From NCBI GenBank assembly GCA_002104945.1, contig MCFH01000085.1, positions 94,736 to 158,735 of the forward strand: a stretch of DNA of 64,000 nt, written 5' to 3'. Below, one piece after another: positions 52,266-64,000 of this stretch. The stretch is from Piromyces finnis finn. Taxonomy: Eukaryota > Fungi > Neocallimastigomycota. The position numbers and the translations under genes are program-made. The notes beneath the pieces are model-generated. The model saw only the letters and a program-made list of their open reading frames with translations, was not told the origin of the DNA and ran no database searches. Position 1 is the stretch's first letter. Every line of letters starts with the position of its first letter.

Positions 52266-52501
52266 TATTAAATTTAACTATACTATTATATTATTATAAA
52301 TTTTGTTAGAATATGTGAAATTTATGTCACATGTATTCAAATGTATTGAGATGTATTATATTTGATTAGATGTTTAAGCCACAATGTAAATGTATAAATA
52401 CATGTAGTTTGAAAATAATGTAACGATAGTAGTTCTTTATCATAAAAATATATTAATAAAGTTGGCATAATTATAAAATCTAAATTAACCAACTCTTAAT
52501 T

Positions 52502-52811
<310 letters not shown>

Positions 52812-53139
52812 AATTCAATAACTAATATAATATATTTAAATATACTTAGTTAAATAATTCAATTTTTACTTTAATTGCAAATTATAAATATAATGATTAG
52901 AAATTTTAGTATTTAGTAAGAATTATTTATGATTTTTGCATTGTAGCTTATATATTTGATCGATCTATAACAATATGTTATATTTTAAACATTCTAATAA
53001 AATAAAATAATAAAAAATAACAATATAAAAATTTATATATTATATTTATATTTTCAATCTAATAATTCACTTTTAGTTAGTGTTACTATTCTAGGCAACA
53101 AAATTCAATGAACTGATAAATGTCTAAAAATTACTAATT

Positions 53140-53211
53140 AGGGGCGTTCCGGATTTGAACCGAAGACCTATTGATCTGCAGTCAATTGCTCTACCGCTGA
53201 GCTAACACCCC
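53140..53211 (-). tRNA. trnC-GCA: tRNA-Cys (anticodon GCA), intronless
   Basis: GGGGTGTTAGCTCAGCGGTAGAGCAATTGACTGCAGATCAATAGGTCTTCGGTTCAAATCCGGAACGCCCCT. 7-bp acceptor stem, A-box TAGCTCAGCGG, B-box GGTTCAAATCC, discriminator U. Confidence 0.97.
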
Positions 53212-53226
53212 AATTATTAATTTTTG

Positions 53227-53930
53227 TGTTAAGGAACCAACAAATAATGTTATTCTTGTCATAATTAATGATTATGACCTAATCCATTCATTATTGTTCC
53301 TAAATGTATGAAAACTTTACAATATTCTTATTTGTAAATTAATGTATACACTTAAATTATATTTAAAATTATTAATAATTATTTTTATTGAACTTAAATT
53401 TTATTTTATTAAACTTAAAAATTAATTTAGTAATAATAATATATTGAAAATTATAGTTTATTGAACTTTTAGTTTAATTTATCAAGTTAATGAATTTTTA
53501 TTAATTAAAATTATGAATAATATTTCTGTAAAATAGTAAAATTCTTTAGTTAAATATATTTAAAGTAAACTTTTAATGTATGTTAATCAATTTAATAATA
53601 TGTATAAATATTTATTATAATAGTAATGTAATTTTATTATTCATGTAAAAGTAATTTAAATACTAAAATTAATGTAAATAATTAAAGACTAATTCTTTTA
53701 ATTAACACTACTTAATTTTTTACAAAAAGTATAAAAAGGTGTATATTATAAGAATTAGAGAATAGACATATATTTTTATTTTTATTTTATTTTATAATTT
53801 TATATTAATATCTTAATAAAACAATTTTATTAATAAAACAATTTTTCTTATTTCATTTTAATATTATTTTTGAGTATTAATAAATTTATTAATATTTTAT
53901 AAATAAAAGTAAATTCCTCGAACCGTAACA
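53227..53930 (+). repeat. 5' LTR of element 1 (704 bp)
   Basis: Runs TGTTAAGGAACC...CCGTAACA. By manual alignment it differs from the 3' LTR by 4 substitutions and 3 small indels. Confidence 0.96.
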
Positions 53931-53937
53931 TAAAAAT

Positions 53938-53956
53938 TGGTGGAGATATCGGGGAT
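53938..53956 (+). other. Primer-binding site complementary to the 3' end of tRNA-Ala
   Basis: TGGTGGAGATATCGGGGAT versus the reverse complement of a typical eukaryotic tRNA-Ala 3' end, TGGTGGAGATGCCGGGGAT (17/19, from recall). It lies 7 nt after the LTR. Confidence 0.8.
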
Positions 53957-54808
53957 AATATTAATAAAAATTATTAATACATAGGATAAAGTAATATTAA
54001 AATATTACTAAAATATTATATAAATTTCTTAAAAATTTATTACCCTTCAAAGTTATAGGTAATATTTATATTACTGTTGAAGCTTTAAGGTATAATATTT
54101 TAGTAGAACTGAATTAGTACGCTTTAGAAGCAGTACTTATTTAGGAATTAGTGGTTAAGTTTTTAGGTCTAGTTTATCTTTCACAGTAGGATACTGGAAA
54201 GCGCTGAACCTTTCTATTTTGCTAGAGAAATAGAAGTGCCTCGCATAATTGCTACATGACACTGGTAATACGGTAAGCTGGGCAATTGTGAACTACTTAA
54301 GCACCCTAAATAAGTATTGGAAAATTGCTGTGAAATGCTGTTCTACTATACTTATTATTGTAATTCAAATTTTTAATAAATTAAATATTATTTTAGTATT
54401 TATAATTTTTTAAAAAAAAAAAAAAAAAAATATTTTTTTTTTAATTGAACGATTTTTAAAAATTATTCTTTTTAAAATATAAATAAATAATTCGAAAGTG
54501 ACCCTTAGCGTGGCAAGTTAAACTGCTGTACGTAATACTTTGGTGTTCAATTATATCTGATAATTGGGGAAGATAATCAATTATTTTCTTTCCGCTAATT
54601 AAGTTAGTGATAATAAAGAAATTAATTACGTTACTTCCTTTTATTAAATTATATTTAATATTAACCATCGGGTATATTTGTGGCTTATCATCAAAGAGCT
54701 ACGAGGGATTTTCACTTAGAATTACACAACCTATAATACTTGATGGTTTAACATTATATAGGTTGGCCTATATTTTTATAAAAAGAAATAAGTTTTTAAA
54801 TAATAATT

Positions 54809-54848
<40 letters not shown>

Positions 54849-55477
54849 GATATATATATCTATTCTTTTTGTTGATTCTCTTCGAGTAATTTAATATTGC
54901 TAATTGAAATATTCTTTTCTTACTGTTTTAAGTTAAACAAGTTATATCAGCATAGACAAGCCTTATTAACTAATCAACAGAGGTATACTAGGGGTGGTAG
55001 AAAGATCCTGAAGCACGTGACGGAACTTAGATCGTGTGAATAAGGTGACGGCAACATTTACCATTGGACAAAAGACTCTTAGTTAATAGTCTATTATATA
55101 TAATTTGGTCGGTAACTTGAATCAGTAATAACAATATTAAATTAAAATTCTTGCTAGTAAATTGAAAACAAATAATAATTAACTATAAGAAAAACAGAAA
55201 ACAAAAGTAATAATTTCATCTTTTCTGACTGAACTAAGATAGTAAGGAGTGATACTAAAAATTTAAATAAATAATTGGTAGTACGTGCTGTGCTAGATTA
55301 TTTGTATCTCATTCTGTCAAGTGGTCGATAAAGGAATTTCGAGCTTGGTTACAACTAATAAGTGGTCGATAAAGGAATTTCGAACTTATAATTTTTTTTA
55401 GACTATCAAAGGTATTTTTGAGTCTATACTGTGTCATCTTGTACTGCAATTAATTCGGTCAAGGAAAATACAAGAAA

Positions 55478-56359
55478 ATGAGCAATTCTACTACAAGGAT
55501 AGATTTCAAGGAGTTGAAGAAGGAACTCAAGGATATAGAAAAACTTTCCAAAGATAATTTGGACATAAGATCCTGGGCTTCTGAAATAAGTTTATGGATT
55601 GAACTTCAAGATATCACTAGTGCCAAGAAAATTTACATGGCATGTGTGCTTACTTCTAAGGGTGAACCAAGAAAGGTAATCCAAGAGTTGGAAGATAAAG
55701 ACAGTGATAGTGAAGATGAATATGAAAGTGAAAATGAAGAAGAGAATCAGAAAAATGAATCTAATGAAGAAGATTATCCCTCACTTGGGAAAATTATCAA
55801 TGCCCTTGAAACATTTTATGGGTTAAAAGAAGATCAAAGTATGTTATTACGGGAACTAAGAAGACTACGTATAAGAAGAAATGAATCAGTTAAAGATTTC
55901 AATAGAAGATATAGATCTTTATATTTAAAGTTGGATAAGAAAAAGAAGAAGCAGATTAGTGTGTTAGATTATGCAGATTCTTTACAAAATAATAAAGAAG
56001 CATGGAGAAAAGTATCTTTAAAAGATGATATCACCCTAGAAAAGGCCTTTAAGATAGCTGAGAAGGTAGATAGGTTATCTACTAGAATAGATAATGATGG
56101 TAATCTACCAACGACTACTGCAATAACCAAAAGTTATAATAATTTTCAACCATACAAGAGAAAAGTTTCTTTTACTGAAGCCAAAAAGCCTAATAAAGAT
56201 GATGAAATGAATAACCTAGTCAAGAAAATGAAAAATTTAACTATTAAAGCTTGTTTCTTCTGTAGTGAACCTGGTCATTATCAACAAAATTGCCCAAAAC
56301 TTCAAGCTATTATTGAAGGAAACAAGAAGCGTTATTATGATAATCATTTAAATCATTAA
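55478..56359 (+). CDS. gag: Gag of element 1 with C-terminal CCHC zinc knuckle
   Basis: Capsid-like segment LRELRRLRIRRNESVKDFNRRYRSL and knuckle CFFCSEPGHYQQNC. Confidence 0.92.
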   Translation: MSNSTTRIDFKELKKELKDIEKLSKDNLDIRSWASEISLWIELQDITSAKKIYMACVLTSKGEPRKVIQELEDKDSDSEDEYESENEEENQKNESNEEDYPSLGKIINALETFYGLKEDQSMLLRELRRLRIRRNESVKDFNRRYRSLYLKLDKKKKKQISVLDYADSLQNNKEAWRKVSLKDDITLEKAFKIAEKVDRLSTRIDNDGNLPTTTAITKSYNNFQPYKRKVSFTEAKKPNKDDEMNNLVKKMKNLTIKACFFCSEPGHYQQNCPKLQAIIEGNKKRYYDNHLNH

Positions 56360-59300
56360 GTGGGAGAAGAAGCACTCCCATCGTCAATAAAATAGCTTCA
56401 GCTCAGTATCAGTCAATGCCAAGTGAAGAAACAACAAGCCAGAGTGATTGGTCGAAAGAAGAATATGATGAAGAAATCGAAAGTGACTTTGAAGATACTG
56501 ATATTAATGAACAGTTCTTTGTATGTGCTAATAAAAGGAAGTTGGATAAAATAAGCAAAGAACAAGATGGTAATAAAGAAAAACGACTTCACAAAAACTT
56601 GAAAAATGATCCTAGACCTATTCTTACACCTGCTCTTAGGAAACGTAAAGCACAAGAATTAGAAAATATACCAATAGATGTTTCTCCTAAGCAACTGCAT
56701 CCTTCTATTATTGCTCAACCGAATATCAGAGAACAAAAACTAAAAGAAAGAAAACTTCGGGATAAAGAGCGTGCTAGTAGTAGTGAACAAAAGGAAGAAG
56801 AAAAGAATGAATTGGCAAGTTCTAATGAAGATCCTATTATTATCGACTATGATGAAGAAGAAATGTTGTCTGCAATTACAGATAAGAAAGGTGCTAAGGT
56901 GGTAGAGAAAGATAACACAAGTGAATCAACCAAATCTACTTCTAATTCAACTCTAAATAAATTAATGAAAGAGCAAAAGAAAGAAAAACCTGCAGAATCG
57001 AAGGTTAAGAAAACTGCTAGAAATATTCAAATGATAGCAGATACGGAAGAATATAATGTAGTTAAAGATCTTAACGAAACAAAATGCAATATTACTTTTG
57101 GTCAATTACTTAACTCGGCTCCAAAGTTACGAACGCAAGTGTCACAAGGTCTTAAACTGGAAAAGAACAACACAAAAATTGTGGGAGCTCTGGAGAATTT
57201 TAATGCTACTTCGGTATTAGTAAATAATGTAGATCATTTGTATGTAAGCAAAAGTAAAGAAGTATCAGAAGAAGATATCGCTATGGTAGATGCAACGGTT
57301 GATGGGGTACCAGGTAAATTATTAGTTGATTCCTGTAGCAACTTAAGTATTATAACAAAAAAATATTTAGATAAACTTCCCCATCAATATGAATCTATTG
57401 GATTGAGTTGTGGAAGAATACGTTTAGCTACTAAAAATGATGACTATTCGGAAGGTATAATTATTAGAGTACCGGTCCAGATAAATGATCTTACAATCAC
57501 TGCTGATTTTAGAGTGGTGGATAAAGAAGACCCCTTTTATGATATGTTAATTAATTTGAAAACCCAAATGGATAACAACTTAATTATCCACCCACTTCGC
57601 TATAGTCTTTGCAGATTTAATTCAAATGGATTTATTGAAGATATTGCTCCAATTAATAACAAATATGATGATGAAGAAAAGATTATGTGTATGATACGTA
57701 GAGTCGGTGATGAAGATTTTAAAAGTGATTTGAAAAATATTGAAGGTTTACCACCTTCAGAATATATTCACAATAAAAATTTTACTGAGACTCTTAATGA
57801 AAAGTATCGAGAACAAATTGTTCGGATATTGGAAGAGAATATTGAAATTATTGCTACTTCTTCTGAAGAACTAACACCTTCGAATTTAACTCCCCATAAG
57901 ATTAATTTAAAGCCAGGAGCAAAGCCAATTAAACAAAGATCATATAGGTTAGCCAAGTTCAAATCTGATATACTTAAGGAAGAATTGTCTAAATTGATTA
58001 ATAAAAAGCTAATTGAGCCATCGTACTCGGAATGGTCTTCTCCGGTGGTTTTGGTCCCGAAGCATAATGGGAAATGGAGAATGTGCGTGGACTATCGAAG
58101 AGTTAATGATTTGTCTGAAAAGGATGCCTATTCAATTCCTTTTATAGATGAGATATTTGATAGTTTACATGGTGCAACTATATTCACTACTATGGACTTA
58201 TATTCCGGCTATCATCAAATCCTTATGGATGAAGAAAGCGTTGAATTGACAAGTTTTACAACTAAGTTTGGAAATTACCAATTCAAGGTTATGCCTTTTG
58301 GTCTCACTGGAGCACCCGCTACATTTCAGAGGGAGATGAATCGGATTCTGTTTCCGTTAATTGGAAAGTGTGTTTATAACTTCATTGATGATATTCTGAT
58401 CTATTCAAAGAGTATTGAAGAACATATTGAACATATAAATCAAGTTTTAGCAATTTTCCGGGAAAACAAACTAAAAATCAATATTGAAAAATGTCATTTT
58501 ATGCAAACTGAAGTTGACGTGTTAGGCCATCGTTTAACTACAGAAGGTCTTAAACCATTAGATAACAAAATCCAAGCTATAAAAAATTGGAAACCTCCTT
58601 CGAATATCCATGAATTAAGATCATTCCTAGGTTCAATTGGATATTATAGAGATTTTATTCCTAATTATGCTAAACTTACTGCTCCCTTGTGTAAGCTGCT
58701 TAGAAAAGGTGTTCCTTTCAAATGGTGTAATGAACAACAAGAGAGTTTTATTATATTGAAAGAAAAGTTAATTAATGCGCCTATTCTGAAATTCCCTGAT
58801 TTTGAGAAAGAATTTATAATCCGAACAGATGCATCGTATGAAGGAATCGGAGGAGTATTATTACAAAAGGAAGGCACAGATATTGAACATCCAATTCATT
58901 ATATTAGCCGAAGTCTGACGAAAGCAGAAAAAAATTATGGAATTACTGACTTGGAAGGGACTGCCTTATTTTACTGCATTACTAAATTAAAGCCTTATAT
59001 AATGGGAAGTCCATTCAAGACTATCGTCTATACTGATCATAAACCATTAATTGGATTATTTAAAAATAAGGAGCCAAACAATGCAAGACAAACAAGATGG
59101 TGTTTAACAGCTAGTATGCTAGGAGTTGATATTCGTTATGAACAAGGTAAAAAGAATGTTGTAGCAGATGCACTGTCTCGAATGAGAAATGACAAAGATA
59201 AGGAAGTGTTAGCTACTAAAATTAATAAAGGTATAGAAGAAACCATGCTATCTAAGGTAATTAAAGAATTTGTTGAAGAAAAGTTCACCAAAATAGATGG

Positions 59301-60402
59301 GGTGGATTACTTTATTGATGGAAGGAATTATCGAAAACTGATCACGGAAACCAATGAAAAGCTGAAATTGATTTTGGAAGCTCATAACATTGGACATGAA
59401 GGATATTATAAAACTTATCAACGTCTGAGAAAAAGCTATTATTGGAACGACATGGTTAATGATATTCGAAGAGTTGTAGCCAAATGTGAAAAATGCCAAC
59501 TTAATCGCCCTCAACCATATCCAGAACCTACGGAAAATCTTCCAACTGAGGTTGAAGCTCCTTTCACTCATCTGGGTTTAGATATCATTGGTCCATTGGT
59601 AAAAACTCGTAACAATAACCAATATATTATAGTTGCAGTGGATCATTTCACAAAATGGGTCGAAGCAGAACCCACCGAAAATATCACTTCAAAGGATGTC
59701 ATAAAATTTTTAATCAATGTTTTCTCTCGGCATGGAGTACCACAAGTCATTACAACCGATAACGGTGTCCAATTTACCTCAGATATGACCAAAGTTTTCC
59801 TGGACTTATATGATGTCTATGTCAAGTTTGTCTCAACTTATCATCCTGAAAGTAATGGTTTGACTGAAAATAGAAACAAAGAAATTGGAAAGCTTCTAAG
59901 ACTGCTTGGAAAAGAAAACAAGGATTGGGATGAAATTTTGCCTTCTGCTCTTTGGGCGCTCAGAACTACTAAAAATACTGTCACAAACCATTCTAGTTTT
60001 GAATTGGTTTATGGAAGAGAAGATCAGCAACCCTTTGATATTGCCGCCAGACCTACTAAGGGTATTAATCAGTCTTCGGATGAAATCTTACTTGAGAAGT
60101 TTATTAATCATTACAGGTGGACGTTGGAAGCTTGTGAAAATATTAAAAATGCGAATAAATACTGGGCTACTAGAAGGGAAGAAAAACAAAGTATGACTAA
60201 GGGCAAAAATATCCATATCGGTGATCTAGTATTAGTTAGAAATTTTAATCGAACGAAGTTAGAACCTTATTTCGTTGGACCACTCAAAGTTGTCAAGAAA
60301 CAATTCAATACGGTTACTTTAGCTGATATATCCACTGGAATTCAGATGAACCGAAATGTTCATCTTAAGAACATTGTAAAGTTTAACTCTGCTTTTGCGT
60401 AA
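56344..60402 (+). CDS. pol: Pol of element 1 (spacer-PR-RT-RNase H-integrase with GPY/F module, no chromodomain)
   Basis: PR LVDSCSNLSII; RT WSSPVVLVPK, MCVDYRRVN, YHQI, MPFGLTGAPATFQR, FIDDILIYS; RH TDASYEGIG, VYTDHKPL; IN zinc finger H..GH...C..C, LDIIGPL, TDNGVQF, YHPESNGLTE; GPY/F YFVGPLKV. The first in-frame ATG is at 56416. Confidence 0.96.
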   Translation, partial: SFKSLSGRRSTPIVNKIASAQYQSMPSEETTSQSDWSKEEYDEEIESDFEDTDINEQFFVCANKRKLDKISKEQDGNKEKRLHKNLKNDPRPILTPALRKRKAQELENIPIDVSPKQLHPSIIAQPNIREQKLKERKLRDKERASSSEQKEEEKNELASSNEDPIIIDYDEEEMLSAITDKKGAKVVEKDNTSESTKSTSNSTLNKLMKEQKKEKPAESKVKKTARNIQMIADTEEYNVVKDLNETKCNITFGQLLNSAPKLRTQVSQGLKLEKNNTKIVGALENFNATSVLVNNVDHLYVSKSKEVSEEDIAMVDATVDGVPGKLLVDSCSNLSIITKKYLDKLPHQYESIGLSCGRIRLATKNDDYSEGIIIRVPVQINDLTITADFRVVDKEDPFYDMLINLKTQMDNNLIIHPLRYSLCRFNSNGFIEDIAPINNKYDDEEKIMCMIRRVGDEDFKSDLKNIEGLPPSEYIHNKNFTETLNEKYREQIVRILEENIEIIATSSEELTPSNLTPHKINLKPGAKPIKQRSYRLAKFKSDILKEELSKLINKKLIEPSYSEWSSPVVLVPKHNGKWRMCVDYRRVNDLSEKDAYSIPFIDEIFDSLHGATIFTTMDLYSGYHQILMDEESVELTSFTTKFGNYQFKVMPFGLTGAPATFQREMNRILFPLIGKCVYNFIDDILIYSKSIEEHIEHINQVLAIFRENKLKINIEKCHFMQTEVDVLGHRLTTEGLKPLDNKIQAIKNWKPPSNIHELRSFLGSIGYYRDFIPNYAKLTAPLCKLLRKGVPFKWCNEQQESFIILKEKLINAPILKFPDFEKEFIIRTDASYEGIGGVLLQKEGTDIEHPIHYISRSLTKAEKNYGITDLEGTALFYCITKLKPYIMGSPFKTIVYTDHKPLIGLFKNKEPNNARQTRWCLTASMLGVDIRYEQGKKNVVADALSRMRNDKDKEVLATKINKGIEETMLSKVIKEFVEEKFTKIDGVDYFIDGRNYRKLITETNEKLKLILEAHNIGHEGYYKTYQRLRKSYYWNDMVNDIRRVVAKCEKCQLNRPQPYPEPTENLPTEVEAPFTHLGLDIIGPLVKTRNNNQYIIVAVDHFTKWVEAEPTENITSKDVIKFLINVFSRHGVPQVITTDNGVQFTSDMTKVFLDLYDVYVKFVSTYHPESNGLTENRNKEIGKLLRLLGKENKDWDEILPSALWALRTTKNTVTNHSSFELVYGREDQQPFDIAARPTKGINQSSDEILLEKFINHYRWTLEACENIKNANKYWATRREEKQSMTKGKNIHIGDLVLVRNFNRTKLEPYFVGPLKVVKKQFNTVTLADISTGIQMNRNVHLKNIVKFNSAFA
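56347..56399 (+). promoter_or_regulatory. -1 programmed ribosomal frameshift signal: slippery heptamer plus H-type pseudoknot
   Basis: T TTA AAT lies in the gag frame at 56347-56353, followed by a 6-nt spacer. Stem 1: GTGGGAG (56360-66) / CTCCCAT (56375-81). Stem 2: GAAGC (56369-73) / GCTTC (56395-99). The pol frame is -1 and is open from 56344. Confidence 0.85.
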
Positions 60403-60425
60403 GCAAGAGACTTCGTGGGGGCACT

Positions 60426-61130
60426 TGTTAAGGAACCAACAAATAATGTTATTCTTGTCATAATTAATGATTATGACCTAATCCATTATTGTTCCTAAAT
60501 GTATGAAAACTTTACAATATTCTTATTTGTAAATTAATGTATACACTTAAATTATATTTAAAATTATTAATAATTATTTTTATTGAACTTAAATTTTATT
60601 TTATTAAACTTAAAAATTAATTTAGTAATAATAATATATTGAAAATTATAGTTTATTGAACTTTTAGTTTAATTTATCAAGTTAATGAATTTTTATTAAT
60701 TAAAATTATGAATAATATTTCTGTAAAATAGTAAAATTTTTTAGTTAAATATATTTAAAGTAAACTTTTAATGTATGTTAATCAATTTAATAATATGTAT
60801 AAATATTTATTATAATAGTAATGTAATTTTATTATTCATTTAAAAGTAATTTAAATACTAAAATTATGTAAATAATTAAAGACTAATTCTTTTAATTAAC
60901 ACTACTTAATTTTTTACAAAAAGTATAAAAAGGTGTATATTATAAGAATTAGAGAATATACAGATATTTTTATTTTTATTTTTATTTTATTTTATAATTT
61001 TATATTAATATCTTAATAAAACAATTTTATTAATAAAACAATTTTTCTTATTTCATTTTAATATTATTTTTGAGTATTAATAAATTTATTAATATTTTAT
61101 AAATAAAAGTAAATTCCTCGAACCGTAACA
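60426..61130 (+). repeat. 3' LTR of element 1 (705 bp)
   Basis: Same termini as the 5' LTR, preceded by a short G-run (GTGGGGG, 60415-60421) in the PPT position. Confidence 0.96.
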
Positions 61131-61134
61131 TTTG

Positions 61135-61758
61135 TGATAACGGATTGGTAGTTATATTACAACTTTTTAACTACTTCTTCTGTTATCTTATATTGTTTTA
61201 TCTCGACAGCTATTGTACGAGCTTTAACAATATCTACTAGTTTTATTAATTTATTTTAAGTTATTTTATAATTTTAATAGTTTTATTATTTTAATAATAT
61301 TTATATAGAATAATAACACCAGATTTATTCTATAAAATATTATTTATTATTAACACAATAATTACAAATTAGACAAGTTTAATTTCGTTTTTATATTTTC
61401 TTTTATTTATTGTTCTTACGCTCTTTTTAACAATAATTTTTATTATATAAAAACTTATTTTTTTTGTCTTTTAAATATTATTATGTATTCACTAATTAAT
61501 TATATTAACTATTATTAAAATTTAACTTATTATTAGTAATCTAAGTCTTCTCATTTTCTACTAAAAATTATTATTATTCTTTATAATAAAAATTATTTTT
61601 ATAATTTAACCCAATCAAATATATAAATTTATAAAATATTTGATTTTATGTAAATTATATTTTTATAATAAACTATATAAAATTATTTAATAATTATTTT
61701 ATAATAAAAATTTCTACTAATATCAAATGTATAATATATTTATAATTATTATTTATCA
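61135..61758 (-). repeat. 3' LTR of element 2 (624 bp)
   Basis: Termini TGATAA...TTATCA form a 6-bp inverted repeat. PPT AGGGGAGGAAA (61772-61762) lies 3 nt before it on the minus strand. The partner LTR is outside the window. Confidence 0.78.
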
Positions 61759-62093
61759 AGATTTCCTCCCCTAAGATACGACTTAGTGGTAGCTGATAAA
61801 AATATTCATAAATAATAATAAATATATAAGTTTTTGATATTTTTATACTAAAGATTTAAAAATTTAAATTTTTTTTTTTTTCTATATATATGATAAAAAT
61901 AATATAAAATAAGGTTTATAAAAAAAATGATGAAAAATTTGAAAATTTTTATTAATAAAATTTTTTTTTCAAAGAGAAATAAAAAAAATGAAGTGAAATT
62001 TTGTTAAATGTCGTAGTGTAAATATTTTTGTGTTTTTATATATTTTTGTAATGTAATTGTCGTATTATTTGTATATAAATGTTTAATGTGGTT

Positions 62094-64000
62094 TTATCTT
62101 TCTTTAAACTTTGAAAATAGATGAAATTTTGATTTTAATATGTCGAAATAATGTCGTTTTAAAATTGAAGTTACTGATTTGATATAATCTTTTAGATTGA
62201 AAATAATTGAATTTGAAATACTTTCTTTTACACTTTTTATTATACTGAAATATATATTCTTAAACGAATTATTTGATGAATTTTTGATTATATCATTTTG
62301 TTTATTTCGCTTTTTTCTTGATTTTAATTTCCTGTTAATATTAATATTCAAATGATTATATTTTAGAATTTTACTTTTATTTTTATATATCTTGATTTTG
62401 TGGCATTTTTCGTGAATAATTGGCGTTTTTTCTGCTTCATCACGGCCGACAAGATTTGACTTATTAATTGAAAATTTAATAAGTGAATCGTTTTTAATTC
62501 TTTTTGGAAATTTGCTGAAATTTGAATGAAAAATGTGATATTTTGGATAAAAATATTTATTTTTAAATTTGATTAAATGTCGAAATTTAATTGAATATAA
62601 AAGTTTGTTTTTATTGTTAAAAGTCGAATTAAAATTTTGAATTTTGATATTATTATTAAATGAATTAAATTGAGATTCATTAATATTTGATGGATTGAAA
62701 CAATGAATCATTGAAATATTTGAAAGATTATTTTTATTTTGTTTAAAATTTGAGGGACGAGCAACCATAATAGGAGATGAATTAGTTTTCATGTAGAGAG
62801 AGTCATCATCAGGATCAATGTATAATCGGTGATTCTTTTGAGATTGACGACCTAATATAATATCATAACATGAATCTTCATCTTCTAGAATCCAGAATAA
62901 TGCATAGATTTTTAAATCACCAAATTTAAGAGTTAAATTAACAGCTTGATTTGTTGAAATAACTTGTTTGCTAGCTAATTTAAAGAAAGTTCTCTTAAAA
63001 TGTGTAATATTATGATTTGCTGATATTAAATTAAAGAAGGATTTAGTAATAACATTAACATCAGAACCAGTATCTACTAAAACTCGGACAATGTTATTAT
63101 CAATTGAGCCAATGACAGAAGCAATGTTGATTTTATTAATGACATTAATTTCGTTATCTGCTATATTGATAATATCATCATCATTGTCATTATCAGCATC
63201 ATCATTGTTTTCATTATTTTTATTATTATAATTTTCATTAATGATATTAATAAATGAATTAATATCATCATCATTAAGATCCATATTTTGAATGGCGTTT
63301 ATTTTCCGAACGTCATTTGGATCAAGCTTTAAACCTTTGGCACAAAGTCTTCTGATGATAGGACTGACTGCAAGCAATTGTGCAAAAGAGATACCAGCAT
63401 TTGTATTATTAAGGGCATCAAAAATATTATATTCTTTATTTTTGCCCAACATGACAATAGAACGTAGGAAGTCATAATAGTTGCTTTTGGGAGACTTTTT
63501 GCTATCTATAACTTCTTCTAATTCGTCCTGTTTACTTGGTATATCTGGACCAATTCTTCTTTTATTTCTGGTTTCTTTATTTTTCATCTTAGCAGAGGAA
63601 ATATTCTTGCCTGCAATTACCGAGGGGTCTAAGATGTCTAGGCGGGAAGTAGTGGTATGAAAATTTGAATTTTTCTCATTACGAATTTCTTGCTGTTCTT
63701 TCATCTGAGTGGCCTTTGTATGTATTGGTAATGGATTTTCTCGAAGTTTCTTTTTCTTCGACTGAGTCACGTGATCCTCATCATCACTTTCATCACTTTC
63801 TTCAGAACTTTTTCTCTTGAATGCATAAATAAGGTTTTCGATGTCCTTATCATCGACTGTATTTGTCACGTGATCACGTGTAACGTAATCCTTATCATCT
63901 TCATTGATTGGATCATCCACCAAAGGGTTAGAGAATTTTTCTTTAGAATTTGGAAATTTTTTTGTTTTATGGAAATCACGTGTATCATCAACATAGATTT
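62094..64000 (-). CDS. Element 2 polyprotein (5'-partial): acidic spacer, pre-protease conserved block, aspartic protease, basic N/K/I/F-rich tail
   Basis: The frame is open to the window edge (IYVDDTRDFHK...). It contains YNIFDALNNTNAGISFAQLLAVSP, VRVLVDTGSDVNVI and YDIILGRQSQK, then ~230 codons with no RT motif before the stop at 62094. Confidence 0.85.
   Translation of the reverse strand, partial: IYVDDTRDFHKTKKFPNSKEKFSNPLVDDPINEDDKDYVTRDHVTNTVDDKDIENLIYAFKRKSSEESDESDDEDHVTQSKKKKLRENPLPIHTKATQMKEQQEIRNEKNSNFHTTTSRLDILDPSVIAGKNISSAKMKNKETRNKRRIGPDIPSKQDELEEVIDSKKSPKSNYYDFLRSIVMLGKNKEYNIFDALNNTNAGISFAQLLAVSPIIRRLCAKGLKLDPNDVRKINAIQNMDLNDDDINSFINIINENYNNKNNENNDDADNDNDDDIINIADNEINVINKINIASVIGSIDNNIVRVLVDTGSDVNVITKSFFNLISANHNITHFKRTFFKLASKQVISTNQAVNLTLKFGDLKIYALFWILEDEDSCYDIILGRQSQKNHRLYIDPDDDSLYMKTNSSPIMVARPSNFKQNKNNLSNISMIHCFNPSNINESQFNSFNNNIKIQNFNSTFNNKNKLLYSIKFRHLIKFKNKYFYPKYHIFHSNFSKFPKRIKNDSLIKFSINKSNLVGRDEAEKTPIIHEKCHKIKIYKNKSKILKYNHLNININRKLKSRKKRNKQNDIIKNSSNNSFKNIYFSIIKSVKESISNSIIFNLKDYIKSVTSILKRHYFDILKSKFHLFSKFKER

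Follow-up and report, generated by a model that had tools for sequence, protein, structure and literature searches.

Position-specific integration upstream of those genes that RNA polymerase III (Pol III) transcribes is the textbook case of harmless transposon targeting and serves as a model for programmable, safe DNA insertion. To our knowledge, what is understood of its mechanism comes almost wholly from Ty3 of yeast. Ty3 integrates at positions -2/-6 relative to the start site (PMC8632968, PMC5911963). The integrase (IN) of Ty3 has an SH3 C-terminal domain (CTD, residues 369-433) and a vestigial chromodomain (residues 446-511), which binds both Brf1 and the target DNA and helps to set the site (PMC8632968). 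The Ty3/gypsy elements known to insert upstream of tRNA genes are Ty3, Ty3p, Tj1, Tca8/beta, Tyl3, Ylt1, Tyl6 and DGLT-A, and the fungal ones among them are all from ascomycete yeasts (PMC5911963). The locus described here lies in a 64,000-nucleotide stretch (the window) of contig MCFH01000085.1 of the anaerobic gut fungus Piromyces finnis, and carries two different long terminal repeat (LTR) retroelements, element 1 and element 2, stacked upstream of one tRNA-Cys gene. A sequence-only reading of the window had taken the two for a candidate Pol III-targeted system, of a kind that it did not know to be described in Neocallimastigomycota; a literature search likewise found no paper on tRNA-targeted elements in anaerobic fungi.

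The tRNA-Cys(GCA) gene is the only tRNA that ARAGORN calls in the window, and a T-run terminator lies just past its 3' end. Element 1 extends from 53227 to 61130 and has a TTTG target-site duplication (TSD) on both sides. Its 5' LTR starts with TGTTAAGG at 53227 and terminates with GTAACA at 53930; a global alignment of the two LTRs, ~704 nt in length, has 3 substitutions and 4 indel events. The terminal TG of the second LTR family follows at 61135, where the forward strand begins TGATAACGG. Excision of 53227-61134 leaves the element 2 LTR exactly 15 nt from tRNA-Cys, with the U5 end facing the gene as it did prior to the arrival of element 1. Two different elements thus entered at the same nucleotide and the newer, element 1, pushed the older outwards, as the sequence-only reading had proposed from coordinates that all match the sequence base for base. 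That 61135-61758 is an LTR is confirmed by its genomic copies, by at least seven pairs of them spaced 3,901 nt apart and by the purine tract that adjoins it.

Targeted integration at Pol III type-2 promoters, which consist of an A and a B box, is strongly supported by the distribution of element 1 in the assembly (56.46 Mb in 232 contigs; the G+C content of the window is 21.6%). A search with the element 1 LTR gave 181 candidates, of which 40 were scored, all of them 98-100% identical; 30 loci were fetched and sorted into 5', 3' and solo LTRs. These 30 best loci yielded 19 independent flanks on the U3 side. Eight have the 5' end of a canonical tRNA 13-16 nt from the LTR, four adjoin the end of another LTR, and seven have a degenerate tRNA-like module with a B box (two mismatches at most) at 65-68 nt, as in class I tRNAs, against a background of 2.9e-4 such matches per position. 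No tRNA was found in the 3'-side flanks of the 30 loci. The flanks lacking a tRNA gave no Rfam match at gathering scores (20 loci) or at E<=1 (seven loci), and ARAGORN with introns allowed found no extra tRNAs in the loci. Targets as degenerate as the tRNA-like ones escape the tRNA model, and the position of the B box served to characterise them instead.

Counts over the whole genome were made by exact pattern searches, which undercount and which concern fixed copies only. The 18-mer at the U3 end of element 1 occurs 101 times; 30 of these occurrences are internal 3' LTRs preceded by the polypurine tract (PPT), so that 71 ends face host DNA. As for the concern that most copies might lie far from Pol III genes, the B-box core GTTCRA was found at a fixed distance, 64-79 nt outward, at 31 of the 71 ends, and at none in the reversed-pattern control; our own estimate of the chance expectation for 71 flanks is ~0.4, which the count exceeds by far. 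The 31 targets are 15 canonical tRNAs and 16 degenerate tRNA-like repeats. The canonical tRNAs belong to six amino-acid types (Arg, Cys and Ser, three each; Trp, Gly and Ala, two each), and the gaps that separate them from the LTR are 13 nt (2), 14 nt (3), 15 nt (7) and 16 nt (3). Element 2 ends that face a tRNA or a tRNA-like unit do so across 13-17 nt. The position-specific insertion suspected from one locus is thus seen for both families throughout the genome, 13-17 nt upstream of tRNA or tRNA-like genes. The TSD read there, 4 bp and unlike the 5 bp of Ty3, is also general, since it was found in all 15 LTR pairs and solo LTRs in which it was readable. A search of the genome with the tRNA model RF00005 listed 63 tRNAs.

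The orientation of element 1 is fixed. Its U3 end is toward the gene in 31 cases and its U5 end, searched with the same pattern, in none (two-sided binomial ~1e-9), so that element 1 is transcribed divergently from its tRNA in all 31. Element 2 has no such bias, with 12 U3-facing and 11 U5-facing ends. The far sides of the element 1 LTRs record earlier insertions: of 18 distal flanks, 14 carry the TG with which a different LTR family terminates, at an offset of 4 nt in 10 and of 3 nt in 4. One insertion after another has thus used a single phosphodiester to within 1 nt. The stacks at such sites are made up of at least ten distinct LTR termini or families. Element 1 adjoins element 2 a second time at L003/L058, where the TSD is TTGT and the event is for this reason an independent one. 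LTR ends also lie 15 nt and 13 nt from two tRNAs that are bystanders in the fetched loci, and on a public contig a further copy of tRNA-Cys has another LTR family 14 nt upstream. The locus L016 (G000:C176:194666-198375) contains an inverted duplication of a tRNA-Ser(GCT)-tRNA-Met(CAT) pair, and both of its outward tRNA-Ser genes have an LTR end 15-16 nt upstream, each of a different family.

Spacers and TSDs vary from site to site and share no motif, which indicates that the site is not defined by sequence and that the insertions are independent. Segmental duplication as the origin of the repeated adjacency to tRNAs was considered and ruled out, because the tRNA types, spacers and TSDs differ; C136 and C188, which have an identical spacer and are possibly duplicates, are the exception to the varied spacers. 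The DNA on the far side may be any LTR or no LTR at all, and the A/B-box unit is the sole constant. In tRNA-Ser genes, which have a long variable arm, the B box is found at 75-77 nt while the distance to +1 is again 13-16 nt. The ruler is thus read from the 5' end or from the A-box side of the unit. A contig from a 2022 sample (X4) has the U3 end of element 1 15 nt from a tRNA-Ser(TGA), and no element 1 LTR is present at the near-identical site of this genome, G000:C135:220061-220090, which differs by one mismatch; the pair may be read, tentatively, as an insertion polymorphism. Four metagenome contigs with a 57-80% identical pol have the same primer-binding site (PBS) and the same short integrase C-terminus. 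They contain neither a tRNA nor a complete LTR pair and are thus uninformative on targeting elsewhere.

The degenerate targets fall into repeated units of their own. Family X is a unit of ~434 nt that ends ...TTTCTTTACA and starts T(G/A)CTAGAAATAAC; the start is followed by a degenerate tRNA-like module with an A-box-like TTAGTGGTTAGTA, a B box and a T-run. At least seven independent insertions of elements 1 and 2 lie 12-15 nt outside this module, and its sister version X' (e.g. L028) accounts for four more. Family Y is a second repeated tRNA-like unit, which starts with GTCGTTCCAGTTTTTATCC, combines a perfect B box with a longer body unrelated to tRNA, and looks in sequence like a short interspersed element (SINE). 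Both element families insert 7-12 nt upstream of its start. At G000:C1:134578-134678 the unusually GC-rich GGGACGGGACCCGTCC... comes next after the LTR end of an element 2 copy, with the B-box core at the usual distance; this target may be another kind of Pol III gene. The features of the window and the copies of the two repeat families are listed in Table 1.

Table 1. Features of the tRNA-Cys locus in window coordinates, and positions of the tRNA-like repeat families elsewhere in the assembly
Feature	Position	Strand	Basis and remarks
tRNA-Cys(GCA), intact target gene	53140..53211	(-)	ARAGORN and sequence; mature 5' end = 53211
15-nt spacer, tRNA 5' end to element 1	53212..53226	(.)	sequence
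Left TSD copy TTTG, final 4 nt of spacer	53223-53226		sequence
Element 1 5' LTR, 704 nt, TG...CA	53227..53930	(+)	sequence, repeat search, alignment; U3 end toward tRNA
Untranslated leader, ~1.55 kb, unusually long, A-runs	53931..55477	(+)	
PBS, 7 nt past 5' LTR	53938..53956	(+)	complement read from sequence
gag open reading frame (ORF), 293 aa, CCHC zinc knuckle	55478..56359	(+)	ORF list, Pfam
Candidate -1 frameshift heptamer T TTA AAT, gag frame, just 5' of gag stop	56347..56353	(+)	three-frame translation
pol ORF, 1328 aa	56416..60402	(+)	Pfam, PDB sequence search, structure model, Foldseek, relatives
PPT region, G-rich, 23 nt, pol stop to 3' LTR	60403..60425	(+)	sequence
Element 1 3' LTR, 705 nt	60426..61130	(+)	sequence, repeat search, alignment
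Right TSD copy TTTG, sole DNA separating element 1 from element 2	61131..61134	(.)	sequence
Element 2 3' LTR, 624 nt	61135..61758	(-)	sequence and genome search; own orientation TGATAAAT...CCGTTATCA
Element 2 PPT, AGGGGAGGAAA on minus strand	61759..61778	(-)	sequence
Element 2 ORF, 609 aa	62094..63923	(-)	pol N-terminal region and aspartic protease (DTG), then low-complexity tail
Family X copies	L006:1067-1500, L007:1066-1499, L022:2211-2644; also C20, C151, C198, C194		
Family Y sites	L024 upstream flank; C13:414978, C14:45107, C167:414721, C197:103267, C1:2076964, C157:618904, C198:146161		

Element 1 is a young, high-copy and apparently coding-intact LTR retrotransposon of the Ty3/gypsy (Metaviridae) type. 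It has LTRs bounded by TG...CA and flanked by a TSD, a CCHC gag, the domain order protease (PR), reverse transcriptase (RT), RNase H (RH) and integrase, a PBS complementary to a tRNA, and a PPT. Its youth follows from the near-identity of the scored LTR copies and from the three substitutions between the LTRs of the window copy. Neither gag nor pol has an internal stop. The Pfam matches occur in the order zf-CCHC, Asp_protease_2 (weak), RVT_1, RT_RNaseH, Integrase_H2C2 and rve; within pol, an acidic/basic N-terminal region is followed by the protease (aa ~277-372, with a D-S-C motif), RT (547-707), RNase H (770-898) and the integrase. The same junction of PPT and 3' LTR recurs 30 times in the genome. 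From about 56340, ~19 nt ahead of the gag stop, the pol frame is open, and the heptamer T TTA AAT in this overlap is a candidate classical -1 slippery sequence. The closest named relative of the pol protein is an Orpinomyces gene model.

The PBS is a 19-nt complement of the 3' end of tRNA-Ala(TGC) plus CCA, and the gene for this tRNA is in locus L017. The PBS core TGGTGGAGATATCGGGG recurs in several LTR families (L004:~618, L011:~618, L002:364, L060:1075, L012:479 and L070:368-384) and in an 80% identical element on a metagenome contig, and element 2 matches its first 9 nt only. The co-targeting LTR families thus seem, as far as these matches tell, to share one primer tRNA. The protease motif, at 57319-57327 (region of pol residues 302-304), is D-S-C or D-T-C both in element 1 and in its closest relatives (P0001, P0004, P0013, P0014, P0018, P0023 and P0025), whereas distant relatives and element 2 keep D-S/T-G; judged from these relatives, the cysteine is a clade-wide variant rather than a lesion of this copy. 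In one public contig, from a run of uncertain type, 139 nt of the leader (54360-54498, with GT..AG ends) are skipped; the skipped part may be intronic, or the contig may represent a deletion variant. At 52429-52857 there is a long tandem array, first of 12-nt and then of 9-nt period, ~300 nt past the 3' end of tRNA-Cys.

The integrase of element 1 is shorter at its C-terminus than that of Ty3. The last 383 residues of pol align in a PDB sequence search to residues 1106-1444 of the Ty3 chain 7q5b_A and no further. The pol stop is 5 residues past the segment aligned to the Ty3 SH3 CTD, and the 23 nt from there to the 3' LTR are too few to encode another domain. A structure model built on 26 relatives (mean pLDDT 80) consists of the N-terminal extension (NED), the N-terminal domain (NTD), the catalytic core domain (CCD), a linker helix of 42 residues (276-317 in the integrase segment) and an SH3-like barrel, with which the chain ends. 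The best whole-chain matches found by Foldseek are chains of the prototype foamy virus (PFV) and Ty3 intasomes. Almost all of the 60 relatives inspected, which are about 50-86% identical, end within ~15 residues of the same motif, and the exceptions are a few truncated or frame-shifted calls. Neither a PF00385 chromodomain match in Pfam nor a C-terminal extension was found, so the feature that defines chromoviruses is missing. Alignment, model and relatives therefore agree with the sequence-only reading that the integrase terminates right after the GPY/F-SH3 module, but its statement that the chromodomain is lacking 'like Ty3' was mistaken: the Ty3 integrase does have a vestigial chromodomain, at 446-511 (PMC8632968), and its absence from element 1 is a difference. 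It follows that the tether of element 1 cannot be the CTD-chromodomain tandem of Ty3. By analogy with Ty3, the SH3-like CTD on its long linker helix is a candidate for the part that contacts a Pol III factor.

Element 2 is, by its coding sequence, a non-autonomous gag-protease element, a separate family distantly related to element 1. A genome search with its LTR gave 301 first-look candidates, of which 40 full-length matches were scored, all 99-100% identical; the family length is ~4.5 kb. At the window locus the partner LTR is expected near 65036 but the contig ends at window position 64000, and the gag ORF and the 5' LTR fall past this end. The 609-aa ORF contains no RT, RNase H or integrase, and is 23% identical to residues 19-393 of the element 1 pol (E = 5e-21). 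In the complete copy L033, which has an internal region of 3.3 kb, a CCHC gag is found 5' of the protease ORF and nothing else; this gag is 26% identical to that of element 1 (E = 6e-6). Since only gag and protease are encoded, element 2 must borrow RT and integrase. The earlier description of the two elements as a targeting 'system' thus stands as far as both families are position-specific, but it was an overstatement for element 2, which has no RT or integrase of its own. One lead to its autonomous partner is the family whose LTR starts with TGATAAATAATGAAATT.

These results are very probably explained by an element 1 intasome that is guided to internal, type-2 Pol III promoters (A plus B box) and joins DNA 13-16 nt upstream of the gene, so that insertions stack, with element 2 being mobilised in trans. 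The element 1 cDNA would be joined 13-16 nt upstream of the first mature tRNA nucleotide, which is approximately where Pol III starts and just downstream of TFIIIB; the joining would create the 4-bp duplication and would always leave the U3 end toward the gene. Because the promoter is internal to the gene, each insertion leaves its target intact and re-usable. The next insertion would hit that phosphodiester again, to within 1 nt, and would move the earlier element outward, so that the stacks would be chronological. Element 2 would use the same site in trans, in either orientation. Guidance would come from contact between proteins, with the Pol III pre-initiation complex on the host side; TFIIIB, placed by TFIIIC, is the likeliest partner, and the contact might be made through the SH3-like CTD on the long helix that links it to the CCD, which in Ty3 is the portion in touch with TBP. 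A ruler at the 5' end or the A-box side coincides with the placement of TFIIIB and with the zone of Pol III initiation, and so fits the logic of Ty3.

Several observations weigh against this explanation. The exact B-box pattern is missing at 40 of the 71 host-facing U3 ends, although those sampled adjoin other LTRs, which fits displacement. The five 5S genes and two U6 genes (L067 and L068) have no LTR end upstream; with a tether to TFIIIB alone some occupied ones would be expected, but the numbers are tiny, too small to tell TFIIIB from TFIIIC or Pol III as the partner. The five 5S genes have an identical upstream context (L063-L065 in G000:C153 are 8,534 nt apart, and L062 and L066 are the others), which places them in repeat units of the rDNA type. 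The fixed orientation of element 1 could come partly from selection after insertion. A Brf1 contact of the Ty3 style cannot be assumed, the chromodomain being absent, and we infer a tether to Pol III factors solely from genomic positions. Finally, public reads lend no support to transcription of element 1, since the four runs, of a type labelled as guessed RNA, have a depth of ~7 on the unique flank and ~117 on element 1 and look like DNA.

The tether may instead be TFIIIC, which occupies both boxes, or else one of the subunits of Pol III, in the way that AC40 is contacted by the Ty1 integrase; an asymmetric complex of this kind would set both position and orientation. We consider this possible but rather unlikely. 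All 31 targets, degenerate pseudo-tRNAs included, are type-2 units, as such a tether would have it, and the unoccupied 5S and U6 genes and the missing Brf1-binding chromodomain also speak for it. A strict orientation, moreover, needs an asymmetric partner, and TFIIIC is known to influence the orientation of Ty3 (PMC5911963, PMC4600332). However, single-nucleotide precision beside the start site is typical of TFIIIB-guided Ty3, whereas the Pol III-subunit tether of Ty1 results in a window of ~1 kb (PMC5911963). The gap is constant to the 5' end and not to the B box, and the emptiness of 5S genes in homogenised rDNA arrays and of only two U6 genes says little.

It is improbable, and very much so, that the integrase reads DNA directly, either the sequence of the tRNA gene or the termini of resident LTRs in a nested form of self-targeting. 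New insertions are indeed nearly always beside an older LTR end, for the LTR termini in 14 of 18 distal flanks have TG(A/T)(T/A)A starts. Nevertheless, in L013, L022 and L023 the distal flank is not an LTR and a tRNA or tRNA-like module is still found at 13-15 nt; what stays constant is the A/B-box unit, and such units have little sequence in common outside the boxes, just as the spacers and TSDs have no motif in common. Still more improbable is untargeted integration followed by selective survival of harmless insertions, even though the DNA upstream of tRNAs is a classic safe haven and the data come from fixed copies and not from de novo events, because the copies are 98-100% identical and hence very young, their positions spread over only 4 nt in six tRNA types, the same phosphodiester is re-used within 1 nt, the orientation is 31:0 in one family and 12:11 in the other at the same sites, and the abundant AT-rich intergenic DNA would hold neutral insertions.

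Guidance of the intasome by the Pol III machinery in these fungi would add to the study of targeting an early-diverging fungal phylum, very young copies by the dozen, a contrast supplied by nature between an orientation-fixed and an unbiased family that share their sites, and an integrase with the precision of Ty3 but without the chromodomain that helps Ty3 to define its site. Two questions would become testable, namely in how many ways TFIIIB or TFIIIC can be read by an intasome and how orientation is set. The case also bears on the idea that compact genomes drive tRNA targeting, as the genome here has 56 Mb and is rich in AT-rich intergenic DNA. If the degenerate tRNA modules in the LTR-like and SINE-like repeats attract Pol III factors, the spread of the elements would also be a spread of new landing pads and would enlarge their safe haven. 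We suggest, tentatively and as an idea that is more doubtful than the targeting itself, that a guild of at least ten autonomous and non-autonomous LTR families in gut fungi addresses the Pol III pre-initiation complex, and that the tether of its lead family is independent of a chromodomain and fixes orientation with a polarity opposite to that of Tj1.

Of the known elements, Ty3 offers the fullest comparison. Both it and element 1 have the order PR-RT-RH-IN, a PBS complementary to a tRNA and an integrase with a NED, an SH3 CTD and, between CCD and CTD, a long linker helix, and both insert just upstream of tRNA genes, with a precision of a few nt, and leave the gene intact. The Ty3 integrase, however, continues for ~100 residues past the CTD with its vestigial chromodomain, whereas that of element 1 ends there, and the TSD of Ty3 is 5 bp as opposed to 4 bp (PMC8632968). 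Ty3 is found in both orientations and element 1 in the divergent one only. The frameshift is +1 in Ty3 (PMC5911963) and a candidate -1 in element 1. Ty3 also uses 5S and U6 genes, none of which (five 5S, two U6) was seen occupied in this genome.

Tj1 is likewise restricted to a single orientation, described by its authors as unique among wild-type LTR elements, but it points the same way as the Pol III gene (PMC4600332), whereas element 1 points in the opposite one, 31:0. Tj1 lies 5-11 bp from the mature 5' end, has a 5-bp TSD and also targets 5S genes (PMC4600332); the corresponding values for element 1 are 13-16 nt and 4 bp. Gag-Pol of Tj1 is made by stop-codon suppression, and that of element 1 would be made by the candidate -1 frameshift. 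In Candida albicans (Tca8/beta) and Yarrowia lipolytica (Tyl3, Ylt1 and Tyl6), Ty3/gypsy elements or solo LTRs are found from a few to 30 bp upstream of tRNAs (PMC5911963, Table 1). All four are from Saccharomycotina; no such element is reported from an early-diverging fungus, nor any case of ten or more families, non-autonomous ones included, that target such sites together. DGLT-A, which belongs to a different eukaryotic supergroup from element 1, has a wider window, either orientation and a single gag-pol ORF, and no full-length active copies. Yet it is also a Ty3/gypsy element that inserts upstream of the mature tRNA, at 13-33 bp (PMC5911963), and it is the convergent case outside the yeasts with which element 1 can be compared.

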